A stretch of DNA of 64,000 bases from Oopsacas minuta (lineage: Eukaryota; Animalia; Porifera), in contig JAKMXF010000221.1 in the NCBI GenBank assembly GCA_024704765.1, forward strand, positions 124,001 to 188,000, written 5' to 3'. Positions 39,053 through 51,402 of this stretch are shown here, piece after piece (position 1 is the first letter of the stretch; each line of letters opens with the position of its first letter). Under the pieces are notes generated by a model. It did no database searches. It had not been told where the DNA came from and was given only the letters and a program-made list of their open reading frames with translations. The position numbers were made by a program, and so were the translations under genes.

Positions 39053-42000
39053 TCATCTGGGGTCGTTGATTCCTGTTTGTGCTCCACTACTTGTGTTATC
39101 ATTATCAGAATCTGAACTACTAGAGTCATCACTGTCATTTTGTGTTGGTAAACGACTTGCTGTCTTCTCTCTTTCTGCTTCTAACGTTTCAGCATCTTTG
39201 TCCTTAAGGTATATAATTTTATCAAATAATTCTTGCTTTTTGTGAGTTGAAAAACTGAAGAGAGGTTGTGAGTTTTTATAAAAATGGAAACAAGGGAGCT
39301 TCAGGTGTCCTTGTAACCCTCTGAGCATAGGTATCGTTTGGAGATCAACTTTCATAAAAATAATTTCTCTATTCATTCCGAGATCAGCATTGATACTATC
39401 AAATACACCCTCAAACTCTTTGGAGGCTTTAGAGCCAGAAGAAGTACACATTAATACCACCAGAGTCTTAGGAGGAGCCTTTTCTAAAATGTTCAGAGGA
39501 TTAATCCGATTTCTTATTATTGGATTAAATATATAGACTTCGGTTGCAAGATTTGATCAAATTATGTTTTCATTAATTCAACAACTAAATATTATTTTAA
39601 CTGTTACCTAGTTCCACACTGTGATCAGTTGCTGTTGTGAATACAATAGTAGGATATACCCTCCCCTCTCCAGCCAAGATTTGTCCCTTCAGTGCCGATA
39701 TTTGCACCAGAACATTACCCCCTTGACCCAAGGAACAATCTCTTAAGCTTAGAGAATGATCACTTAAGGATGTCTGTGAGAATGGTATGGAGAGGGTAAT
39801 TTCTTCAATGTTAAGCTCTGAGATTGTGCAAACTTGGGAGTAGAGTTCGTGAACCTAAGAGAGTAGGTAATTATCAAATAAAAAGTAGAGTTACATTTGT
39901 GGAGATTTGATTAAATTAGTGGAAAGATGTTAGAATTAACAATTATCGCAAACTAATACCAGTGGTTACAACAGCGGTTGTTACTGCAAGTGTAAGTTAC
40001 CGTGAGATAACAACATTGGAAGTGATTGCTTAAGATGAACGTTGTACCTATACTCTATTTGTGGAGGAATTTGGGTTTCGTGTGTGGAGCAACTTTGGCA
40101 CAGATTAGCATAATGATTATTTATCAAATTAATGAATTAACGAATTGGATGTGCCTACTAACAAAGATAGTAGTACATATGTTACCAACTACGGACAGTG
40201 AAATTTCGTACTCCTATCCATAGTAACTTATCAACTCAAGTCATACTTAATTGAAAATGCATTGAGACAAAGTAAACTTCTTCTGACAAGTGACAGGGCA
40301 TATGGCAGTGATAATGAAAATTCAGAAATTAGATCTTAAATATAAGCTAAAGGCAGTTACTCTTACAACCTGATTGATCCAATAAATTGCATTACGACAA
40401 TATGCACCTTAAAATTTTTCAGGTTTCTTCTCGAAATAGTTATTAGCACACTTTAGAGGTTATAGAAGAGCACCCGGATGTTTTGAATGACGTCAGTATT
40501 TTAGGAAATTAATTGTCGCTACTCTATATTCCATTTATTGAACCTGGTACTCAATGAGTAGTAATCCATGACACATGTACACATGAAAAGTGTAATTTGT
40601 AATTTGATGATCCTAAAAGTTATATATTACCACCCACTAGCCAAATTACGATACTACACGTATATATCATGTTGTTCTGCAAATATTCTTTGATCTAACA
40701 AGCAAGCAGGCAAAAGTAATTGATACCAATTAATTAACCAGATCATCTCAAGGATCAACCAAAGGATATATTATTGGCTGCCACCAGAATTTGCTCCTCC
40801 TACTGGTTCTAGTAACAATTAGGAAGAATTTCATTCAAATCATTTAATAATGATAATAGGAAATATAAAATTAGCAAATCACGACTATACGAGAAGAGTT
40901 AAATAACCAATTACACTCAAATAAACGCATTTCACCTGAAGCTAAGAATCTCAATCAATTCAAATGAATTTGTTAAGTTGATTCAGAGAATATACAGTAA
41001 ACATGTTTGTTAATCAAGAATAGAAGTGGTAGATATTCTGATGAAAGAATTCTATTGCGATTCGATCACACAAGTAAGTACCGAGGTTAATTGCCAAATA
41101 GTGACGAAGTTCATTAATGAATAAGAGTTGAATATCCATAATAGTTGGAAATATGAAATGTGCATACGAAAACATGCACAGCAGGACAAATTACTGAGAA
41201 CAATTAAATAATAGAATTATTTCCTATTATTATGATAAAGATGGATTGAACAAAGAGGATAAGAGAATAAAAGAATAAAAGAGATTAATATGAGTTTAAA
41301 ATGTCATAGATAATAATTTAGCGACTTTTAAAATATTCAAAATATGCAATTGCATATTATTATACAGCTACGTAATTAATTCAAAGAATAATCACACTTA
41401 ACAGACTGCTGTAGATTCACAGCTGATTGACACTTAAATGGATTAACGTGAGAGACCTTGTTGATACAACATAATTATTTGTAAGGGTAAAGTTCAATTA
41501 AATACAACAGTAAGTTTATGCGTCAATGTGTCTGTGAATTAAATATTTACATTTTTAGCTCTAGAGGTAAGAAATACTGAGAAAATAACCAATATATTAA
41601 ATGATTTAGTTTTTGAGGAGAAAGATTATAAATTAATATTAGGCAATAACTTTGAAGTACTAAATATAATACGGAATATTTCCAGGTAGATTAATATCAT
41701 GAGGAAGCTCTGCAAATCAATAATTAATCTATCACGCAAGGTTTATGTCGCTGTGTTTATGGTATCAAACAAATGTATCCCTCAGGTCTCTGGGGAAAAC
41801 AATGTGGTGGTCGCATTTTATACCCTGGGTGTATGAGGCAGATGTACATAACTTTGTATTACAAACAATTTTTTATAGAAGCGGGTAACATATCATGTCA
41901 ACTGCTTAGTCGTAGATATCTTGCTTTATGAACCATCTCCTAAGGGCAGACTAGTTTAACATAAACATTAAGCACAACAGATCCCTCTAGTTCCATCCCT

Positions 42001-45000
42001 GGAATTATTGTAAGAATTATGTTCTAATAAGATTTGATGTATAAGTATAACAAACTGATATGGGCTACAAAATTAGATATATTAGAGAATGAACTATTTG
42101 AGACAACAAAGGGAAACAAACACAGAAAGTTACAACATGAAATGGTATAAAAACAATTAAGTTATTCTGACAAGGGATGACAAGGAAGGCAGGATAGAGA
42201 TTAAGGTGTACAACCTAATTGACAGTCACTGGAGATATTTCATTGGTCTCTGGAGCTTTCGTAATCTCTGTGGTTGATCCGTCCTTCTTTTGCTTAGTCG
42301 CAGTCTCGTCAATAGTCGTCTCAGAATCCGGTTTCTCTCCACTAATACGCTCAGAACTAGCATGATATTTCTTACAGTAGTGTGAGAGGAATGTTATCGA
42401 GTTGATCCAACTATCGCGAGTAGTTTCATTAGGAGCTCGCAATTCCAAAGTGCTTGAATCTGTAGAAATGGTAAGGAGGGTTCCTTTGGAATTTTCTACT
42501 GGCTCAACTTTAATGATATCTCCTATAGAAATGGTGCCTCTGAGATTCTTCATCTTAGGAGATTTGTAGTAGTACAATTTGAAACCTTCACCTGCTTGGA
42601 AGTATCTGTTACGCCACATTCCACGAGTAAAGCTCTTTCTACCGCGTTTATGCATCCACCCATTTAGTTCTGTCATTTCAACGAACTTCTGGTGCTCAGT
42701 TTCCCTAACCTGCTTCTCTAGCTCGATATCCTCCACATGGTTTTGAGCATTCTTCAGCTCTTCCTTCGCAACGCTAAAATCTTCCTTGAGTCCTGATAAC
42801 TCTATAACCAGGATATCCTTCTCTTCAGAAATATTATTAATATTCCGTTTGCTTTCCAACAGCTGAGAACTCAATTCACTATTTCTATACTCCAGAGCTT
42901 TCAGAGCGTTGTCTTTATCAGCGATTACACCATTCAGAGAGTCAACTTGTTCGTGTAACTCCTTAGTCTCCGTTTCTTGTTCCTGCTTGTTCTGCTTGAG
43001 CTCCGATATTTGATGCTCAAGCTCGTTATTTTTCTGTATCAGCGCTGCTACCTGGGCATCTTGCTCTTTGTCTTTTTGCTTGGGAGTATCAGTCTTCCCC
43101 CATAAAACTAAAGAACGCTTCTTCTTCTTACGCTTCTCCAAGGGTGTATCAGTACTACAGCCTGAAGAGTCGGATAGGTCGTCATTACCATCTCGGACTA
43201 CGTTGTAGGCTAATGGAGTTGTAGGGACGGATACCCTGGCCTCTTCAGTTCCAGTAGCGTTCAGGACTGGAGATATTTCTCTGTCAATGGTAGTTTGAGA
43301 TACTGGAGACATAGGACCGTTGTCGTCGCCAGGAATTTGGGAATTTACAGAGATTGTATCCTCCTGTAGGCCACTTTTTTTTCGTTTCTTTATTTCTTTA
43401 CTTTTCTGCTTTTCCAATTTTGCAACTTTCTTCTGTTCCACCTTTTCGAATTTGTCCTGCTTCTTCTTCTCAGCAGCCTCCTTTTTCAAACGTTCTTTTT
43501 CAGCTTTAGCTTGTTGCTTTTTCTCTTTACCTATTAGCTTTCTTTCTGCGGAAGGAGATTCCTCTGGACTATGATTACTGATGCCTAACCATGTATCACA
43601 CATAATTTCTGGCGTTTCTTTATCTAGCAAACTTTCTAACTTTAATTTGTCCACTTTATCAACGATGGAATTGTTTTCTACATCTAAAACGACAAGAATA
43701 GGAATTTCCTCGATTTCAAATTTCTCTTTAAGCGCTTCTGTGAACTTAGAATCTGGGGGGATTATTGGAAAAGTTATGTTAGCGGTGGAAACGAATTCCA
43801 TCATGTTTTGATTGTTCACGTCGCATGAAGCTAGGAGCATACCCATACTGCATCCCTCTCGTGCTTCCATTGCATTAACAGCATTGTCAATTATCTGTAG
43901 ATAATTCTTGGAGACAGGAATCCAATTTGCAGCATAGTAGATTCCAATGAACTTTTTGCCACTCAACACTTCGAATGGAATCTGTTCATTCTCTTTATTT
44001 ACTATTTTAGTGTTTCTATTTATCCATTCAAAATAGCTTTCACCGTCACGTATTTCCAAATTGCTTGTTTCATCAGACATGATGAATATTCTCAAATTAA
44101 TAGTAATTTATTAGTCAATGCATGAACTAGTGAATATCCATATATATATACTCGAGTGATGTTCGGTCGCTAGCTAAACTGTATACCTATCATTTAGTAC
44201 GTACACGGTAGTCTATGTACATTATTGTCAATTCGGCAAAGCTAATACGTAAAGTAGCCATACAACTGAATAGTTATTGCTGAAGCTCGGAGTATTGTTT
44301 CGCCAAAAAATAGCTAAAATATCTAAAGGATTGTGTCAAATATATGAATTGAAATTCAACAGTGCCAGAATGTGATCAAGAAATCGTAAAACATTTTGTG
44401 ACTCGATTGATATTGAAAAGATTAGTAGAAATCAAATATGTAGGATAAACGGCATACTACAATTTCGCTAGGAATAAGCAACATTCCACCAAATCGATAG
44501 CCTGTTCATAGTCAAGAAATTATTAAAACGATCCAGTATTAAGCCAAATAGCGCTCAAATAATGTCAATAACTTACTAGTTGCCATATATCCAAAATATA
44601 CGTGAATCGTTAAAAATGCAATTACAGACGATGGCTTAAATATAATTAATACACAATACAATACATATGGTAAATATTCATACAAACACTCAGCATGATG
44701 TACTACGACAATGCAACATATTGTTTGCCAAGTCGTACAACACACATTATAATTCTATTGAATATATAGAATTAATATTATTGTTGCAGAAATAAGAAAA
44801 GTATAAGTATTCGATTACTCAGTATTGGAATAAATTGCATAATAGCCAAATAGCCAAAGAGTAATAAATTCCAATTGACTAAATTGTACTTACACAAAAC
44901 CAAACTAATAGTATATTACTAATCTCCAATTGTTGTTTGTCTGTGTTTGTGTAGGAAACATTTGACCAAATATAACAATGTATTAGTACTAGTACTAGCA

Positions 45001-48000
45001 CCCAATTTGCAATTGCATTTGAGCAAGCAAATAATAATCTATACTAAACGGGGGTAAAGATAATCATAAAATATTCAATTATAACATGAACTTTAAGGTG
45101 TTTCACAATTAATATTAATTATCTACTAATTGAACGCTTTGGAAACTTGAATTCATAAAAAGTTTAGTGATTCTAGTGATTTTGAAAATGAATGATCGGA
45201 CAATCGATAAGCACGTAATTTATAATCTACATGGCGCATGTTGATAGTACTTTATTTTAAATGAGTTATCACAAAAATTTTTACTATCATAAAAAAATAA
45301 TATTTATGGTGAAATGACAAAAAAGGAGATAGATTAATTCTATAGAAATTGTATAATAAACATGACTATTAATCTGAGACAGAGAAGTACGTACAGTACT
45401 TAGATCTGGGTTCACATTCACAATCAGCTGTATAGACTCCAGAATAAATATTATAAGATATTACTTTTTGTGGTTCAGGCTAGTCAAATTAAATTTTTAG
45501 TTAGTTGAAATAATGTTTATATTATGAAAGTTCAAATAATCAATAAATGAATTATGAACATACTTGCGGGATCCTCCTTGCTGTAACAACAATAAAAATG
45601 ATTAATAATTTGAACAATAAACAGCTCTCAATTTATTAACTAATCATGTAATAGGGAAATAAAATACTTCCGTCAATCATAATGAGATTGTATAACAAAT
45701 AATATACTTTCATTGAGATTATTACTACCAAGATCTTGTCTACATCAGACACTACCAAAATCTTGTCTACATCAGACAAAAAGTAATTATGGAAATGAAC
45801 AATTTCAACTCAATTTTCATAATAATTTATCACGTTGGGCAGCTATTAAGAAAATACAGAAACTCTTGTAAATATGAAATATAATGGGTGGTGGATATCC
45901 ATACTCAGATGCGTTTTTTAACTAACAAATAGTGTTAATCCAAAGTTTTGCATAACTATGATCGAATTAAAAATGTAAAATTATATAGTAATTGTGTGTA
46001 GCTAAATACTCACAGTAGCTTCTGGTAGTATCTTGATAATATTCTGAGAGCCATTAGGTAGTCGTACTCGTATGGATACATTGCCAGCATCTCCTAAGCC
46101 AATACAACTTGGTTTTGCCTGAGAATGTGTTGGGAGTTCAACAGGTGCTTGAATGCGTGTAGCTGCTGCACGGTTAGCTTGTTGATGTTTCTTATCTGAT
46201 TCCATATTCTTCATAAGATTTTCCCTAATGTAGCAGAAAGGAAATAAAGAGTAGGGACAACATTAGACGTATTGCACATACATAATTTGTAGAGAACTGA
46301 GCTATTTCCATGGCTAGACGTTAATTTGTTAAGAAAATACACTGAAAAATTCAGTAAACAAGTGTGGCCTTACGTTCTTACTAAAAGCTTATGAACTCAA
46401 TCAAATAATCAAATTAATTAATATCCTATTTAAGTGAAAATCTAATTTCATTCAGCTAAATCGCACAGGATTATATTCGTATAATTATGTATCTTAGTAT
46501 GCAATAGCAATGCATCATGAAGTCCAAGGGAAATTAAAGAATACAAGTTTAATAAATCTCACCACTAACACACGTTATGTATCTGAATACAATGATACAA
46601 TCTAATAATACGAATTAATAGCAATTAATTCGATAGCTACACAATCTTAGCACGTATCTATTACATAACTAATTACTGAATTACAACTAGGACATCAACA
46701 ACAAACATATACCTCACTATTTTAATACAAAATAAAATTTTTCATAAATAAGAAAGGTCAGAAAGGTTAAATTAACAAAACTAAAACACCTATACAAATT
46801 TAATAAGTAAGAAGGTACAGTTATATGTTCCATGCATTGTTATCGCATGATACGAATAAAATTTACATTATTTGTCTTGTGATTTATAATTAATACAGAG
46901 GAGAGTATTGTATCAGCAGTTCAGCACTAGATTAGGGTAAACAATGATAATCTCCAATAAAAACATTTCTACACAATATGATAAAGTTGTAATACTATAG
47001 CGAGGACGGGTATACACAGAGATGGGATTTGTAGTGTGTGCATGCTGTGACATCCGATCCTATTAGGCTAGGGCGTTAATCGTATTTATGACTTCAAATA
47101 AAGCTACATAATGATCTATGAATACTGCTTTTAATCAAGTTAATAATTACTTGTATAATAAAAAAGTTACAGCAAACATCACAGTATATTTTTTACCTCT
47201 TCTATGGTAAGATTAACAGGAATTCATATCACTGAATAACAGATAAACATTATGATGAGACGCATGGAAATTCAGCATCTAGCTATAATTGAATATCATA
47301 ATATATTCCATAGAATAGGAATAGTAAAATAGTTACAAACAAGATAATCATCTGTGATCAGCTGAATCGATTCATCACTGTTAATGCAGCTGTATAATTA
47401 CAAACACTGTATACTATACCAGGTAACAAATACCTAGTAAAGATATGTGAGTATTGATAGAGCAACACAAGTATATGTTAATCTTTAGTGGTAAGGTTAA
47501 TCATCAACAATAAATTTACAGGATAAAAGCTTTACTACTATTATCAGATAAATATCTTAAGATAGTAATTTGTCGATGTTATTAAATTCAGCATGTGTAT
47601 GTAATGTGCTAAATCTAGGAACAAGTTCTAAGATCTAAGCGATCTCTCAAAACTCTCTGAGATAGGTGTCAAAATGTATCCAGCCGCGAGTGCAAATAAG
47701 CGAAGCTTGCTTGTATTATCTAATTACGTAGTCGTGAAAAATATTAAATGAAAGTATTAAAAAACAATAAAGGCGGAAATTGGAATCGGACATTTCGTTA
47801 CTGCAGATATACAAATATAGAAAGTTACAAAACTCATTCTGAAATATATACATGTTATTAATTCATGAATGTTTATTCGTTTTGGATATATTCTCGATAA
47901 ATTACATAATACAGATAAGAATTGATGATAAATACGTTTTGGGAGATGTAAGACCAAATCTAGTCTGTTTAATCATTATAATTATCTAAGAATATTACAG

Positions 48001-50603
48001 AAATAATAACATTATGTATATAAATAAAATCTAGTGAGATAAGATTAAGTAACAACGAGAAACTTTCCACCCACAAGTATACACTGAATTACGCAAATGA
48101 GTAAACAGACAATTAATCAATAAAATAGAACGGAAATTGGTAGATTGTGGGGTATAAAATAAATCGAGATAAATAGGAATTACACGATTTAACTAAAATG
48201 ACAATTCTAGAAGTGTATTTCATCAATTGGTATATGAAGCTAGCATACTTCGGAAACTTTGCATATTGCTGCTTCTTGCTAACTTGGATATTTGCATTAG
48301 CTTACGAGGTGCGAATAACTTCGAAAAAGTTGAAACGACTCAATTCTCTAGCTCTTGATAATCCCAGTCTTTGGGAACAACATTATTCCAATAATATCTT
48401 CAAACATATACTAATGATAATTATTGTATTGCTAGAGATGGCAATAACTGGGTTACTCCAAATGGATGCATTGTATATTCCAACACATTTCTCATTATAC
48501 AAGAATGAAACTGACATAATTCAGCCTACAACGACAGATTCATCTATCCTAGACTGTATAGGACAAGATAATTTTGTAGGAATAGGAGTGGGAGTGTTTA
48601 GTGTTGAGATGTCAGTGTACTTGTATATAATATTGACTTACAGTTTATGTCTAAACTTCTACTCAATGGTTTTCGCCAACAAAATAAAATTGAAGAAACA
48701 AATAAAACCGACTATAACAGGTTATATACTATCTACATCGATAATAGCCCTCATGTTATCAAAGTATACTATAGTATTGGGTATATTTGGTTATGTAATA
48801 CTGTTAGTATCAGCTGTCCTATACTTGGTTATAAGTCATAAACGATTAATTAGAACAATTCAAGCTAAGAGATTTGATGTTTATCAGGAGAGATCAAAAT
48901 GTCAGGCCAGGAGAATCGATAAAGAACTTAACTATGCAAGGAAGATAGGTGGGTTTATCATAATAATCGGGATAATTAGAGTTGTATCCGTATTCTTCTC
49001 CGGTTCCATCGATGCTATTATAATTCCCATAGTACAAAATCCGTGTTTGATAGGATATGTTAGTAATGTTCAAAACATTTATCCACAAATTGATGGGATT
49101 ACTCAGACAATTGCTCAGGTTGTTTTTACACTCGGAAAGATTGTAAATATGTCGTATGTATTGCTTATATTGAGTGTAAACATAATTGTAGTTTGTATAT
49201 ACTACTACCAGAAGAAAGTACAATTACAGAATATTGTCAATAAGAAATATACAACTTATGGTATGACACTGAGAAAAAGATTGTTAGAGTAATTATACGT
49301 ATTTTTTATATGCAAATTTAGTAATTATGTTGTTCTAAGTTAATTTTAAAACATTTATTAAATATTATGTGGGTGTGCATTAATTTAAGCGAATAAGCGA
49401 AAAATGTGAGTAGAAACAAACCTTGCTCGTGCTGATTCTTTCTTTTCAATCATAGCAGCTCTGAGCACTTCTTCCCTCTGTTTCTCAAGGAACGCGTATC
49501 TCTCCCCAGAACTCTCCTGGTACCTGGAAACCAAGGGGACCGAGTGAACAGAGGGGAATGAAGAGGAGCTAGATGGAGACGGTGTAGGGATAGTAGGCGG
49601 AAACTACAAATATATAAAATAATAAAGTAGAGTCAAATAGTTTTAGAATGAATAATTAGAATAACCTGTCTGGGATTAGCATTGATCCACTCTATCGCTT
49701 TCTCTACACTGGTGTTGTCAGTTTGAATTAGAGCTTGAGAAGCTTGCTCAGAAGTGTAACCCATATCCAACAAACCTACCAAAAGACCTCCTCTTGGTAT
49801 TGTAGTGGAGGGTACTGAGGGAGGGGCAGCAACTGGGATAGTCGGATTCGTGAACACATTCCCACTTTTCTCCGTCCCAGTTAGTTTAAGTGTAGAGCGT
49901 TCTGGAGCGGAGACAATAGGTTGTCCTGTACCTTCACTCAATAAAGATAACACCACGGATACATCGATTCCAGCAGGCAGGATAAGAAACTCGTTTTTTT
50001 CATCTGTTTGAAATCCAATGACAAATAGTAGGAATTGTGCTGGTTCGATTTCCCAAACATATCTGTAGAAATAAACACTAGGCCTAAACATATAACAATA
50101 CTTGTAACAGAGCTGTGTAATTAAAGTATTGTTCTGAAGCAGCAATAGAAACGCTGGTAATAATAGTGATTTTATTATGATACAAAGAAATACTACAGAG
50201 ATCCCTGATCCATGTGTATACCCATTACCCCTATAGATCCGCAAATATTAATATATGTTAATAATCTTGATTCCGCACTGTCAGACAGAACATTTGAATA
50301 GAAAATTTCATATGAAAAGTCAATTCTTGAATTGAGTAGGTTCGAAGTTCAAGAGGTGTTTATTATAATACACAATTCATATATACATACAAATATCAAT
50401 TATCAAACAATTGAGTTTAAGGTAAATAAAGTTAAGTACCTTCTAAATCTGTCGTTAGATAATTTAATACTCCTAAACTTCTCTACACCAGGATTGGTAG
50501 CTATTTTCTGAAGAATTCGAATAAGCAAGCTGATAGACTCACGGGACGATTCTTGGTCTGATAGAGATCTGATTTGGGAAATACAAAGACGTGCATCTTC
50601 CAT
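39053..50603 (-). CDS. PUB-UBA-coiled coil-UBX-thioredoxin-fold protein (543 aa); exons 50603-50440, 50062-49666, 49603-49422, 46224-46014, 39854-39608, 39483-39053
   Basis: All five introns are GT-AG with matching phases (2,0,2,0,1); total 1632 nt. PUB LLIRILQKIATNPGVEKFRSIKLSN; UBA LLDMGYTSEQASQAL..SVEKAIEW; UBX VSIRVRLPNGS..PEAT|VHELYSQV; TRX fold LEKAPPKTLVVLM..FMKVD..LPCFHFYKN. Confidence 0.8.
39960..40340 (+). pseudogene. Possible decayed NHL/beta-propeller-like fragment inside the long intron
   Basis: One frame reads YTLFVEEFGFRVWSNFGT and ELDVPTNKDSSTYVTNYGQ*NFVLLS with several stops, loosely like an NHL repeat (P.GL.V...IYVTD.GN..V). Confidence 0.2.
42215..44080 (-). CDS. Nucleoredoxin-like (no CxxC) + Lys-rich + coiled coil + PH domain protein, nested on the same strand in intron 4 of the PUB-UBX gene
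   Basis: LSGKKFIGIYYAANWIPVS (WCxxC site degenerate), KFEIEEIPILVVLD; coiled coil; PH domain GWMHKRG..WRNRYF..LYYYKS..GTISI..LELRAPNETTRDSWINSI. Intronless 626-aa ORF; likely start MSDET. Confidence 0.85.
   Translation of the reverse strand: MSDETSNLEIRDGESYFEWINRNTKIVNKENEQIPFEVLSGKKFIGIYYAANWIPVSKNYLQIIDNAVNAMEAREGCSMGMLLASCDVNNQNMMEFVSTANITFPIIPPDSKFTEALKEKFEIEEIPILVVLDVENNSIVDKVDKLKLESLLDKETPEIMCDTWLGISNHSPEESPSAERKLIGKEKKQQAKAEKERLKKEAAEKKKQDKFEKVEQKKVAKLEKQKSKEIKKRKKSGLQEDTISVNSQIPGDDNGPMSPVSQTTIDREISPVLNATGTEEARVSVPTTPLAYNVVRDGNDDLSDSSGCSTDTPLEKRKKKKRSLVLWGKTDTPKQKDKEQDAQVAALIQKNNELEHQISELKQNKQEQETETKELHEQVDSLNGVIADKDNALKALEYRNSELSSQLLESKRNINNISEEKDILVIELSGLKEDFSVAKEELKNAQNHVEDIELEKQVRETEHQKFVEMTELNGWMHKRGRKSFTRGMWRNRYFQAGEGFKLYYYKSPKMKNLRGTISIGDIIKVEPVENSKGTLLTISTDSSTLELRAPNETTRDSWINSITFLSHYCKKYHASSERISGEKPDSETTIDETATKQKKDGSTTEITKAPETNEISPVTVN
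45724..45777. repeat. 27-bp direct repeat, 2 copies
   Basis: ACTACCAAGATCTTGTCTACATCAGAC followed by ACTACCAAAATCTTGTCTACATCAGAC. Confidence 0.9.
48198..49292 (+). CDS. Orphan 7TM protein, family member 2, nested antisense in intron 3 of the PUB-UBX gene
   Basis: About seven hydrophobic segments; motifs WIFALAYEVRITSKK and YSNNIFKHILMIIIVLLE. Confidence 0.75.
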   Translation: MTILEVYFINWYMKLAYFGNFAYCCFLLTWIFALAYEVRITSKKLKRLNSLALDNPSLWEQHYSNNIFKHILMIIIVLLEMAITGLLQMDALYIPTHFSLYKNETDIIQPTTTDSSILDCIGQDNFVGIGVGVFSVEMSVYLYIILTYSLCLNFYSMVFANKIKLKKQIKPTITGYILSTSIIALMLSKYTIVLGIFGYVILLVSAVLYLVISHKRLIRTIQAKRFDVYQERSKCQARRIDKELNYARKIGGFIIIIGIIRVVSVFFSGSIDAIIIPIVQNPCLIGYVSNVQNIYPQIDGITQTIAQVVFTLGKIVNMSYVLLILSVNIIVVCIYYYQKKVQLQNIVNKKYTTYGMTLRKRLLE

Positions 50604-51402
50604 TAATTCTAACAAGTATACTAAATTCTTAATAAATAAAGGACAATAAAAGGTTAATAATTCCTACGATTTGAAGGAATTGAAACGTTTTAAAACGATT
50701 ATTGACACCTTCCGGAGTGTGATGCTGAGTGAGTCAAGTATACATGACACATGCTGACATGCATACAGGTTTGTGAAGAATTTCATATACAGATGCAGGA
50801 AAAATTCAGAACCATACTTAGAATAGTGTCACAAAATGCAATACTATTCGGGCGTGCGTAATTTACGGGACGTGACGTTGTGGTAACCTCCCAAATTCAT
50901 CGCCCCAAAGTGTATTACTATATGCCTCATGTATTCTGTGATATGCTATCGCTATCCCTACTATCCCGGGATAAAAAAAATGCTAGCGATTTACGATCCT
51001 CATGAGTCCCAAAATGCGTGTGTTTAGGCCTGTGTAGGCTTGTTTGTGGACCCAGTGATTTAGGGACCCTTGGTTCCCGGAAACACTAGGGAAATAGGGA
51101 TCAACCCAGTGATATTATAGGCCCCCCACCCGTAGGTCACCTATATAGAATCTAGATGCTCAACTAGATTTGCTAGTTAACCTAGATTCTTTCTTGTACT
51201 CGATATAACAACCTTTCTGTTGTCTCAAAGTATCCTTTCTTGTGTGTTGACTCAGATTCTTTACCGTATCGATTACAGTTTATATGCAAAAGAACCGAAC
51301 ACTACTCACTGTAACGGGGAAGATGATCTGCGTATATAATATAGGGAATAACATATCCTTCTTTGACGATATAGGAAAAGTAAACAATTACATTTGGGTA
51401 AT

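Follow-up and report, generated by a model that had tools for sequence, protein, structure and literature searches.

Adaptors of p97/VCP are assembled from a small kit of modules, and it is the combination of these modules that decides which clients are unfolded. Here we describe a gene that joins four known modules (PUB, UBA, UBX and thioredoxin) in a combination that we could not find described elsewhere. It lies in a 64,000-nucleotide stretch of the genome of the sponge Oopsacas minuta (GenBank assembly GCA_024704765.1, contig JAKMXF010000221.1, positions 124,001 to 188,000 of the forward strand; hereafter the window, to which all coordinates refer unless another contig is named). Six exons on the minus strand of this AT-rich DNA are confirmed as one real, expressed and conserved glass-sponge gene, which encodes a soluble protein of 543 aa. 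The order of its parts is a PUB domain (residues 18-85), a UBA domain (149-185), a charged linker, a UBX-type beta-grasp domain (297-368), a segment of 30 residues, a thioredoxin fold (about 408-494), an acidic Ser-rich tail and a terminal GINDPR.

The roles of PUB, UBX, UBA and UAS domains in p97 adaptors have been described (PMC8181520, PMC5389986). In adaptors of the UBXD1/PUX2 type, PUB binds the C-terminal tail of p97 and both p97 ends can be engaged (PMC5389986, PMC8181520); UBXD1 (UBXN6) and plant PUX2 also deviate at the FPR loop (PMC8181520). The sponge protein likewise carries PUB together with a UBX domain that has a non-FPR S3/S4 loop. However, its PUB domain is at the extreme N-terminus, a UBA domain is inserted between PUB and UBX, a thioredoxin fold follows UBX, and neither a VIM nor a lariat was recognised in it. 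UBXN1/SAKS1, FAF1, FAF2, UBXN7 and p47, for their part, combine a ubiquitin-binding UBA with a UBX that binds p97, and in UBXN1 a charged helical linker joins the two, much as in the sponge protein. Both domains that together define the UBA-UBX subfamily are found here by domain profiles, and ubiquitin binding is predicted. Unlike these adaptors, which are devoid of PUB, the sponge protein has a UBA that is not N-terminal and a UBX that is not C-terminal. FAF1, FAF2 and UBXN7 also possess a redox-dead thioredoxin-like domain (UAS), which stands before UBX, whereas the sponge fold stands after UBX and is of the classical type.

Thioredoxin domains are found in other proteins of the p97 pathway. 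The sPUB protein of diatoms and chromerids consists of thioredoxin and PUB and is a putative Cdc48 cofactor of the SELMA translocon (PMC3101018; bioRxiv 10.1101/2025.03.31.646294). It couples thioredoxin to PUB on the Cdc48/p97 machine as the sponge protein would, but has these two domains without UBA or UBX, and its thioredoxin is YbbN-related and presumed redox-active. Because sPUB is restricted to stramenopiles and chromerids, the two fusions arose independently. In Caenorhabditis elegans PNG-1, an active thioredoxin is present where other PNGases carry PUB (PMC8997433); thioredoxin thus replaces PUB in the nematode protein, whereas a dead thioredoxin stands alongside PUB in the sponge protein. 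Compared with classical cytosolic thioredoxins (human TRX1, plant Trx h), the sponge domain keeps the fold, the cis-proline and the order of strands and helices, but CGPC has become SKAS, the preceding Trp is a Gly, a fusion has placed the domain at the end of a UBX protein, and its exon 6 model is without the N-terminal strand and helix. None of these systems has all four modules or a classical-type thioredoxin after UBX.

Joined together, the six exons (Table 1) make a frame of 1632 nt that remains open through all 543 codons up to the stop. The five introns (377, 62, 3197, 6159 and 124 nt) are all GT..AG and the exon phases are 0, 2, 0, 2, 0 and 1. An earlier note on this DNA had proposed five GT-AG introns with consistent phases and a product of 543 aa; we recomputed the splice sites and the open frame, with the phases as given there, and the model holds. 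Five public runs contain the locus and four of them were compared with window positions 44950-50900, which hold exons 1-4. Run X4 behaves as RNA, since its depth is 750-2700 over the exons and 0-20 within the introns (exon/intron ratio 50-100); runs X1 and X3 have a flat, DNA-like depth of about 110-140, and X5 is low-depth DNA from a relative. The X4 data place the splice junctions as follows: (i), at junction 3-4, positions 46224 and 49422 are joined at a depth of 1301, skipping exactly 3197 nt with minus-strand GT..AG borders. (ii), at junction 4-5, a loose end at 46012 is identical to 39826-39852, a sequence found at a single place in the window; the junction is read as 46014/39854, with an ambiguity of 2 bases (GT), and spans the 6159-nt intron, whose unspliced signal is about 1% of exon depth. 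(iii), at junction 2-3, a loose end at 49666 corresponds to 49592-49603, the first 12 bases of exon 3 and, (iv), at junction 1-2, loose ends at 50064 and 50440 correspond to 50442-50453 (the end of exon 1) and 50047-50062 (the start of exon 2), respectively. Exons 1-5 are transcribed as a single spliced RNA, and four of the five junctions listed in the earlier note (50440/50062, 49666/49603, 49422/46224 and 46014/39854) are seen directly.

The same data bear on the possibility that the locus holds two genes, one for PUB-UBA (exons 1-3) and one for UBX-thioredoxin (exons 4-6, starting at an ATG within exon 4), and that their join is an artefact. An in-frame ATG is indeed present four codons past the exon 4 acceptor, a frame that runs on beyond the exon 3 donor is closed by a stop 11 codons later, and intron 3, 3.2 kb long, contains another gene; the same-strand gene inside intron 4 likewise made separate halves plausible. 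However, the join between exons 3 and 4 is exact in the X4 contig and similar in depth to the flanking exons, depth is even over exons 1-4, and the split codon and the three residues that precede the exon 4 ATG are conserved in orthologues. Two separate genes are therefore extremely improbable, and the separate transcription of a PUB-UBA half and a UBX-thioredoxin half, which the earlier note had considered fatal to its proposal, is not what X4 contains: the PUB-UBA and UBX halves share one transcript.

Orthologous loci were reached via exon-sized open reading frame (ORF) fragments in public sponge assemblies, and then by synteny. The gene is complete in three of them (L002, L006 and L008), each of which has the six exons in the same phases, the two genes nested in its introns (see below) and annexin genes downstream; their open frames encode 547, 558 and 537 aa, respectively. 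Partial copies were recovered on L005 (exons 1-4), L009 and L010. No spliced cDNA contig was found for any orthologue, L009 and L010 being genomic. The orthologues are 57%-77% identical in pairwise comparisons. Between the window and L002, the proportions of nonsynonymous (pN) and synonymous (pS) differences are 0.18 and 0.75 overall, and 0.16-0.23 and 0.66-0.83 when exons are taken one by one. Synonymous sites are thus saturated while the protein is held, a substitution pattern which indicates that every exon codes and is under purifying selection.

Conservation also speaks to the fifth junction, 39608/39483. Both splice sites and the phase are kept in four species (the window, L002, L006 and L008), and the ten codons with which exon 6 opens, from the acceptor up to its first Met, specify conserved residues while most of them differ synonymously, so translation must enter exon 6 from an upstream exon. 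X4 contains 0.68 of the sampled words of 39053-39860 and the DNA runs 1.00. The equivalent of intron 5 in L006 (14437-14843 of that contig) is GC-AG, with a GCAAGT donor, and GT-AG in the other three species.

Three stretches of 81-82 residues from joined exons were used as queries against Pfam and the Protein Data Bank (PDB). With exons 1 and 2 joined, the PUB profile (PF09409) scored 52.4 bits against a cut-off of 34.3 (E 5e-14), the two halves alone giving 26.5 and 11.6 bits; exon 1 by itself matched profile positions 2-38 (E 6e-6). The UBA domain was matched by UBA_7 (E 9e-10) and UBA (E 5e-7). Both the end of PUB (about residue 85, 49972) and the whole of UBA (49672-49782) are encoded by exon 2, and the two domain calls of the earlier note stand once the exons are joined. 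The closest solved PUB domains found by phmmer were those of PNGase and UBXD1 (6sap). In human PNGase, the PUB residues that contact the p97 tail are N41, K50, Y51 and R55 (PMC8181520); in the phmmer alignment, K50 corresponds to K42, Y51 to F43, R55 to K47 and N41 to K33 (Arg in L006), so that one residue of the set is identical, two are conservative and one is changed. The nearest solved UBA domains were those of USP5 (E 9e-6) and USP13 (E 6e-4); the UBA of UBXN1 (1whc) was a weak match (E 0.15), and an Atlas search with exon 2 returned generic UBA leads only. The linker between PUB and UBA contains a motif, T-L-K-L..G...G-N-V-F-T-x-P-T-I/V-P (49873-49960, minus strand, residues about 112-127), that is kept in spite of a poly-Gly insertion in L006.

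Downstream of UBA, a Pfam scan of exon 3 matched no family, and the conserved charged segment that runs across junction 3-4 is presumably helical. The UBX profile (PF00789) scored 24.7 bits with exons 4 and 5 joined (81 residues), against a cut-off of 21 (E 2.7e-5, positions 7-80 of 82). The L006 copy scored 22.8 bits with UBX and 27.1 with OTU1_UBXL, whose cut-off is 22.7. Taken separately, the exon 4 and exon 5 pieces of the window retrieved no UBX domain in Pfam, by phmmer against the PDB or in a PDB profile search; the exon 4 pieces of three orthologues matched UBX profile positions 2-27 of 82 (E 0.03-0.12). Because these exon 4 matches end at profile position 27, exactly where the exon ends, and because the cut-off is passed only with the exons joined, the UBX domain is truly split between PEAT and VHELY by an intron of 6.1 kb, as the earlier note had it. 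Of the R...FPR signature, which in UBX cofactors inserts into the cleft of the p97 N domain, the first strand retains its Arg (V-R-L-P-N-G) and the FPR loop is missing, its likely equivalent reading I-P-F, I-P-L or L-P-F in a positional alignment made by eye. The segment that follows UBX contains L-A-G-E/V-G-R/K-V-Y/S in four species, and we considered it as an SHP box, a linear motif for the p97 N domain, the consensus of which is h(x)1-2 F/W (x)0-1 GxGxxL with one aromatic residue and two glycines (PMC5389986). Both glycines are kept, the aromatic position is a Leu and the final Leu a Tyr or Ser; the lack of the aromatic residue led us to reject this identification.

The earlier note had also proposed a thioredoxin fold at the C-terminus, with GSKAS in place of WCGPC. 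Pfam recovered only Thioredoxin (PF00085) on exon 6, at a weak E of 0.084, and no UAS-type family, and a profile built from four species matched Trx h in the PDB (E 0.001) with G-S-K-A-S beneath W-C-G-P-C. The fold itself, which spans 39203-39463, was confirmed by an AlphaFold2 (AF2) model, which has the strand-helix-strand-helix-strand-strand-helix order of thioredoxin, and by Foldseek, which returned 309 PDB matches at E <=0.001, with human TRX1 and classical thioredoxins at the top (E 1e-6, TM by target 0.70, 24% identity, rmsd 2.2-2.6 A). Matches among AlphaFold database (AFDB) clusters were nearly all thioredoxin-domain proteins or unnamed. The position of the domain after UBX, the Pfam result and the classical thioredoxins as structural neighbours set it apart from UAS domains, and the modelled structure points to an origin from a classical cytosolic thioredoxin. 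The highly conserved segment of 30 residues at the end of exon 5 may supply the missing first strand and helix of the fold; HMMs with and without this tail aligned to a thioredoxin (P0002) with the same score and over the same extent. In every exon 6 copy, both Cys positions of the CxxC are Ser (S418 and S421 in S418-K-A-S421, the middle varying K/R and A/E), and to judge from its sequence the fold cannot act as a CxxC oxidoreductase. The thioredoxin region is the most conserved part of the protein, with the highest share of invariant columns (0.6-0.8, taken per 20 residues). The C-terminal G-I-N-D-P-R (39056-39073, minus strand) is kept in four species after the variable acidic Ser-rich tail, is not present in the most distant copy, P0012, and may be a C-terminal docking motif.

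Alternatively, the thioredoxin fold may not be inert. C413, at the end of the first strand, and C465, just after the cis-proline, are invariant in all exon 6 copies recovered, including P0012, which is 49% identical. Going by the thioredoxin alignment and the known topology, the two cysteines would lie next to the former active site, on adjacent strands, within the domain that has changed least. They might then form a non-canonical redox or metal site, and the protein would be a redox-sensing p97 adaptor. However, the proximity of the cysteines is read from an alignment, buried structural cysteines are common, and both CxxC positions are Ser in every copy; we regard a redox or metal site as quite improbable.

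All four domains are recognised after exon joining, which supports at the domain level the p97/VCP adaptor interpretation given in the earlier note. We thus propose that the protein is probably a lineage-restricted, multivalent p97/VCP/Cdc48 substrate adaptor. PUB would dock on p97 at its C-terminal tail, the UBX-type domain would contact the p97 N domain, and UBA would hold the ubiquitin chains on the client. Since the FPR loop reads I-P-F, the UBX-type domain may instead have another role, as in UBXD1. Redox-dead thioredoxin folds are known to serve as binding modules, for example the UAS domain of FAF1/FAF2 and the b' domain of PDI. The dead thioredoxin fold of the sponge protein is probably likewise a binding module, for a client or a partner, given that no other part of the protein is as conserved. 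It is tempting to speculate further that the adaptor, specific to glass sponges, bridges both ends of the p97 hexamer while holding ubiquitin, and that the dead thioredoxin, captured from the cytosolic kind, selects clients through its old substrate groove, perhaps with Cys413/Cys465 as a redox or metal switch, and passes particular proteins on to the unfoldase; this fuller scheme is possible, if somewhat doubtful.

Several observations weigh against such an adaptor. Both p97 binding and adaptor function are inferred from domain identity. The PUB pocket carries Lys or Arg in place of N41. The margin of UBX over its cut-off is small (3-4 bits), with RBD (23.8 bits) and ubiquitin (20.4) close by. 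When solved structures were searched with phmmer, the top matches to the beta-grasp region were a redesigned ubiquitin (E 0.016), TUG-UBL1 (E 0.066) and ISG15, with no UBX among them, and the FP dipeptide is absent from the UBX-type domain in all four orthologues. RNA covers junctions 1-2 to 4-5; junction 5-6 lies outside the stretch compared, so that its support is indirect. Finally, the AF2 model of exon 6 was built from 4 sequences and is of moderate confidence (pLDDT 70).

Some of these points are shared by the main rival explanation, which gives the beta-grasp domain a plain ubiquitin-like (UBL) function. The protein would then resemble the UBL-UBA shuttles Rad23 and Dsk2, with UBL on the proteasome, UBA on ubiquitin chains and PUB alone reaching p97, and would bridge p97 and the proteasome. 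Besides the phmmer result and the absent FPR loop, a generic UBL is favoured by the 20.4 bits that the Pfam 'ubiquitin' family scored on the L006 copy and by the Atlas look-alikes of exon 5, which are weak matches to ubiquitin-like families. On the other hand, UBX and OTU1_UBXL are the only beta-grasp families to exceed their curated cut-offs, which they do in two orthologues, 'ubiquitin' and RBD remaining below theirs; the N-terminal strand V-R-L-P-N-G fits UBX positions 2-27 in three orthologues, and the Arg of the R...FPR signature is kept. We consider a shuttle-like bridge unlikely and retain the p97 adaptor as the best explanation.

The fusion looks lineage-restricted because the thioredoxin part was found on glass-sponge-like contigs only. 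When 1.84 billion representatives were searched exhaustively with exon 6 by phmmer, one sponge fragment and one ordinary tandem thioredoxin came up and nothing else, and word-indexed searches (with exon 2 and with an exon 6 profile) returned exon-sized fragments only, on contigs with the same synteny. At least 7 distinct copies are known in this way, all glass-sponge-like. These searches cover exon-sized fragments, and full-length annotated relatives fell outside them. The PUB-UBA-UBX-thioredoxin combination was not found in the exhaustive sequence searches, made with single exons, or in the literature, where a search for it retrieved only a review of plant PUX proteins and general papers on p97 cofactors.

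Table 1. Exons of the adaptor gene and other features of its locus (window coordinates).
Feature	Position	Strand	Description
Exon 1	50440..50603	-	ATG at 50603; residues 1-54 + 2 nt; first half of PUB; RNA junction to exon 2
Exon 2	49666..50062	-	Residues 55-187; second half of PUB, conserved linker motif, UBA
Exon 3	49422..49603	-	Residues 188-247; Pro/Ser-rich linker, then start of conserved charged segment; RNA junctions on both sides
Exon 4	46014..46224	-	Residues 248-318; remainder of charged segment, variable linker, first third of UBX-type domain (from residue 297, 46079)
Exon 5	39608..39854	-	Residues 319-400; last two thirds of UBX-type domain (to residue 368, 39705), then highly conserved 30-residue segment
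Exon 6	39053..39483	-	Residues 401-543 + stop; thioredoxin fold, acidic Ser-rich tail, terminal GINDPR
Splice acceptor AG	50628..50629	-	25 nt upstream of ATG; X4 loose end at 50629
Thioredoxin_8/coiled region/PH gene, 626 aa	42215..44095	-	Intronless; inside intron 4, same strand; separate from host protein
Multi-pass membrane ORF, 364 aa	48198..49292	+	Intronless; inside intron 3, antisense; separate from host protein

The locus has further features of its own. Beyond the acceptor upstream of the ATG, the X4 contig runs on with 11 letters that do not occur in the window; this acceptor is probably the junction to a spliced leader or to a distant 5' exon. The 626-aa gene nested in intron 4 is conserved in L002, L006, L008 and L010. 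Its presence alone on L007, a 1902-nt Logan contig from a relative, suggests a mature mRNA separate from that of the host. For its part, the host transcript has to read through this gene and its 3' end signals, and what the locus displays is faithful splicing over 6.2 kb of intron in which a whole gene lies on the same strand. The 364-aa ORF in intron 3 is found at the same position in L002, L005, L006 and L008; a Pfam scan of it matched no family, and its depth in X4 is low (about 17). Intron 3 also contains a region (47610-47712) where depth is in excess, from 4- to 1000-fold, in all four runs and where loose ends are many. A 51-nt skip within it (47640/47692) is present in the DNA runs too, and the region is probably a dispersed repeat with length polymorphism.

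The fusion of these domains is of interest to specialists of p97 and of pseudo-enzymes and is not surprising in principle; its impact is limited by a function that is read from domains and by the restriction of all finds of the gene to glass sponges, which are difficult experimental animals. Next to the UAS domain, it would be a second case in which a UBX protein has independently gained a thioredoxin-like fold. That the dead thioredoxin is more conserved than the modules for p97 and ubiquitin points to client recognition by a pseudo-enzyme domain. If true, client selection by a dead thioredoxin would be a new principle of substrate selection by p97.

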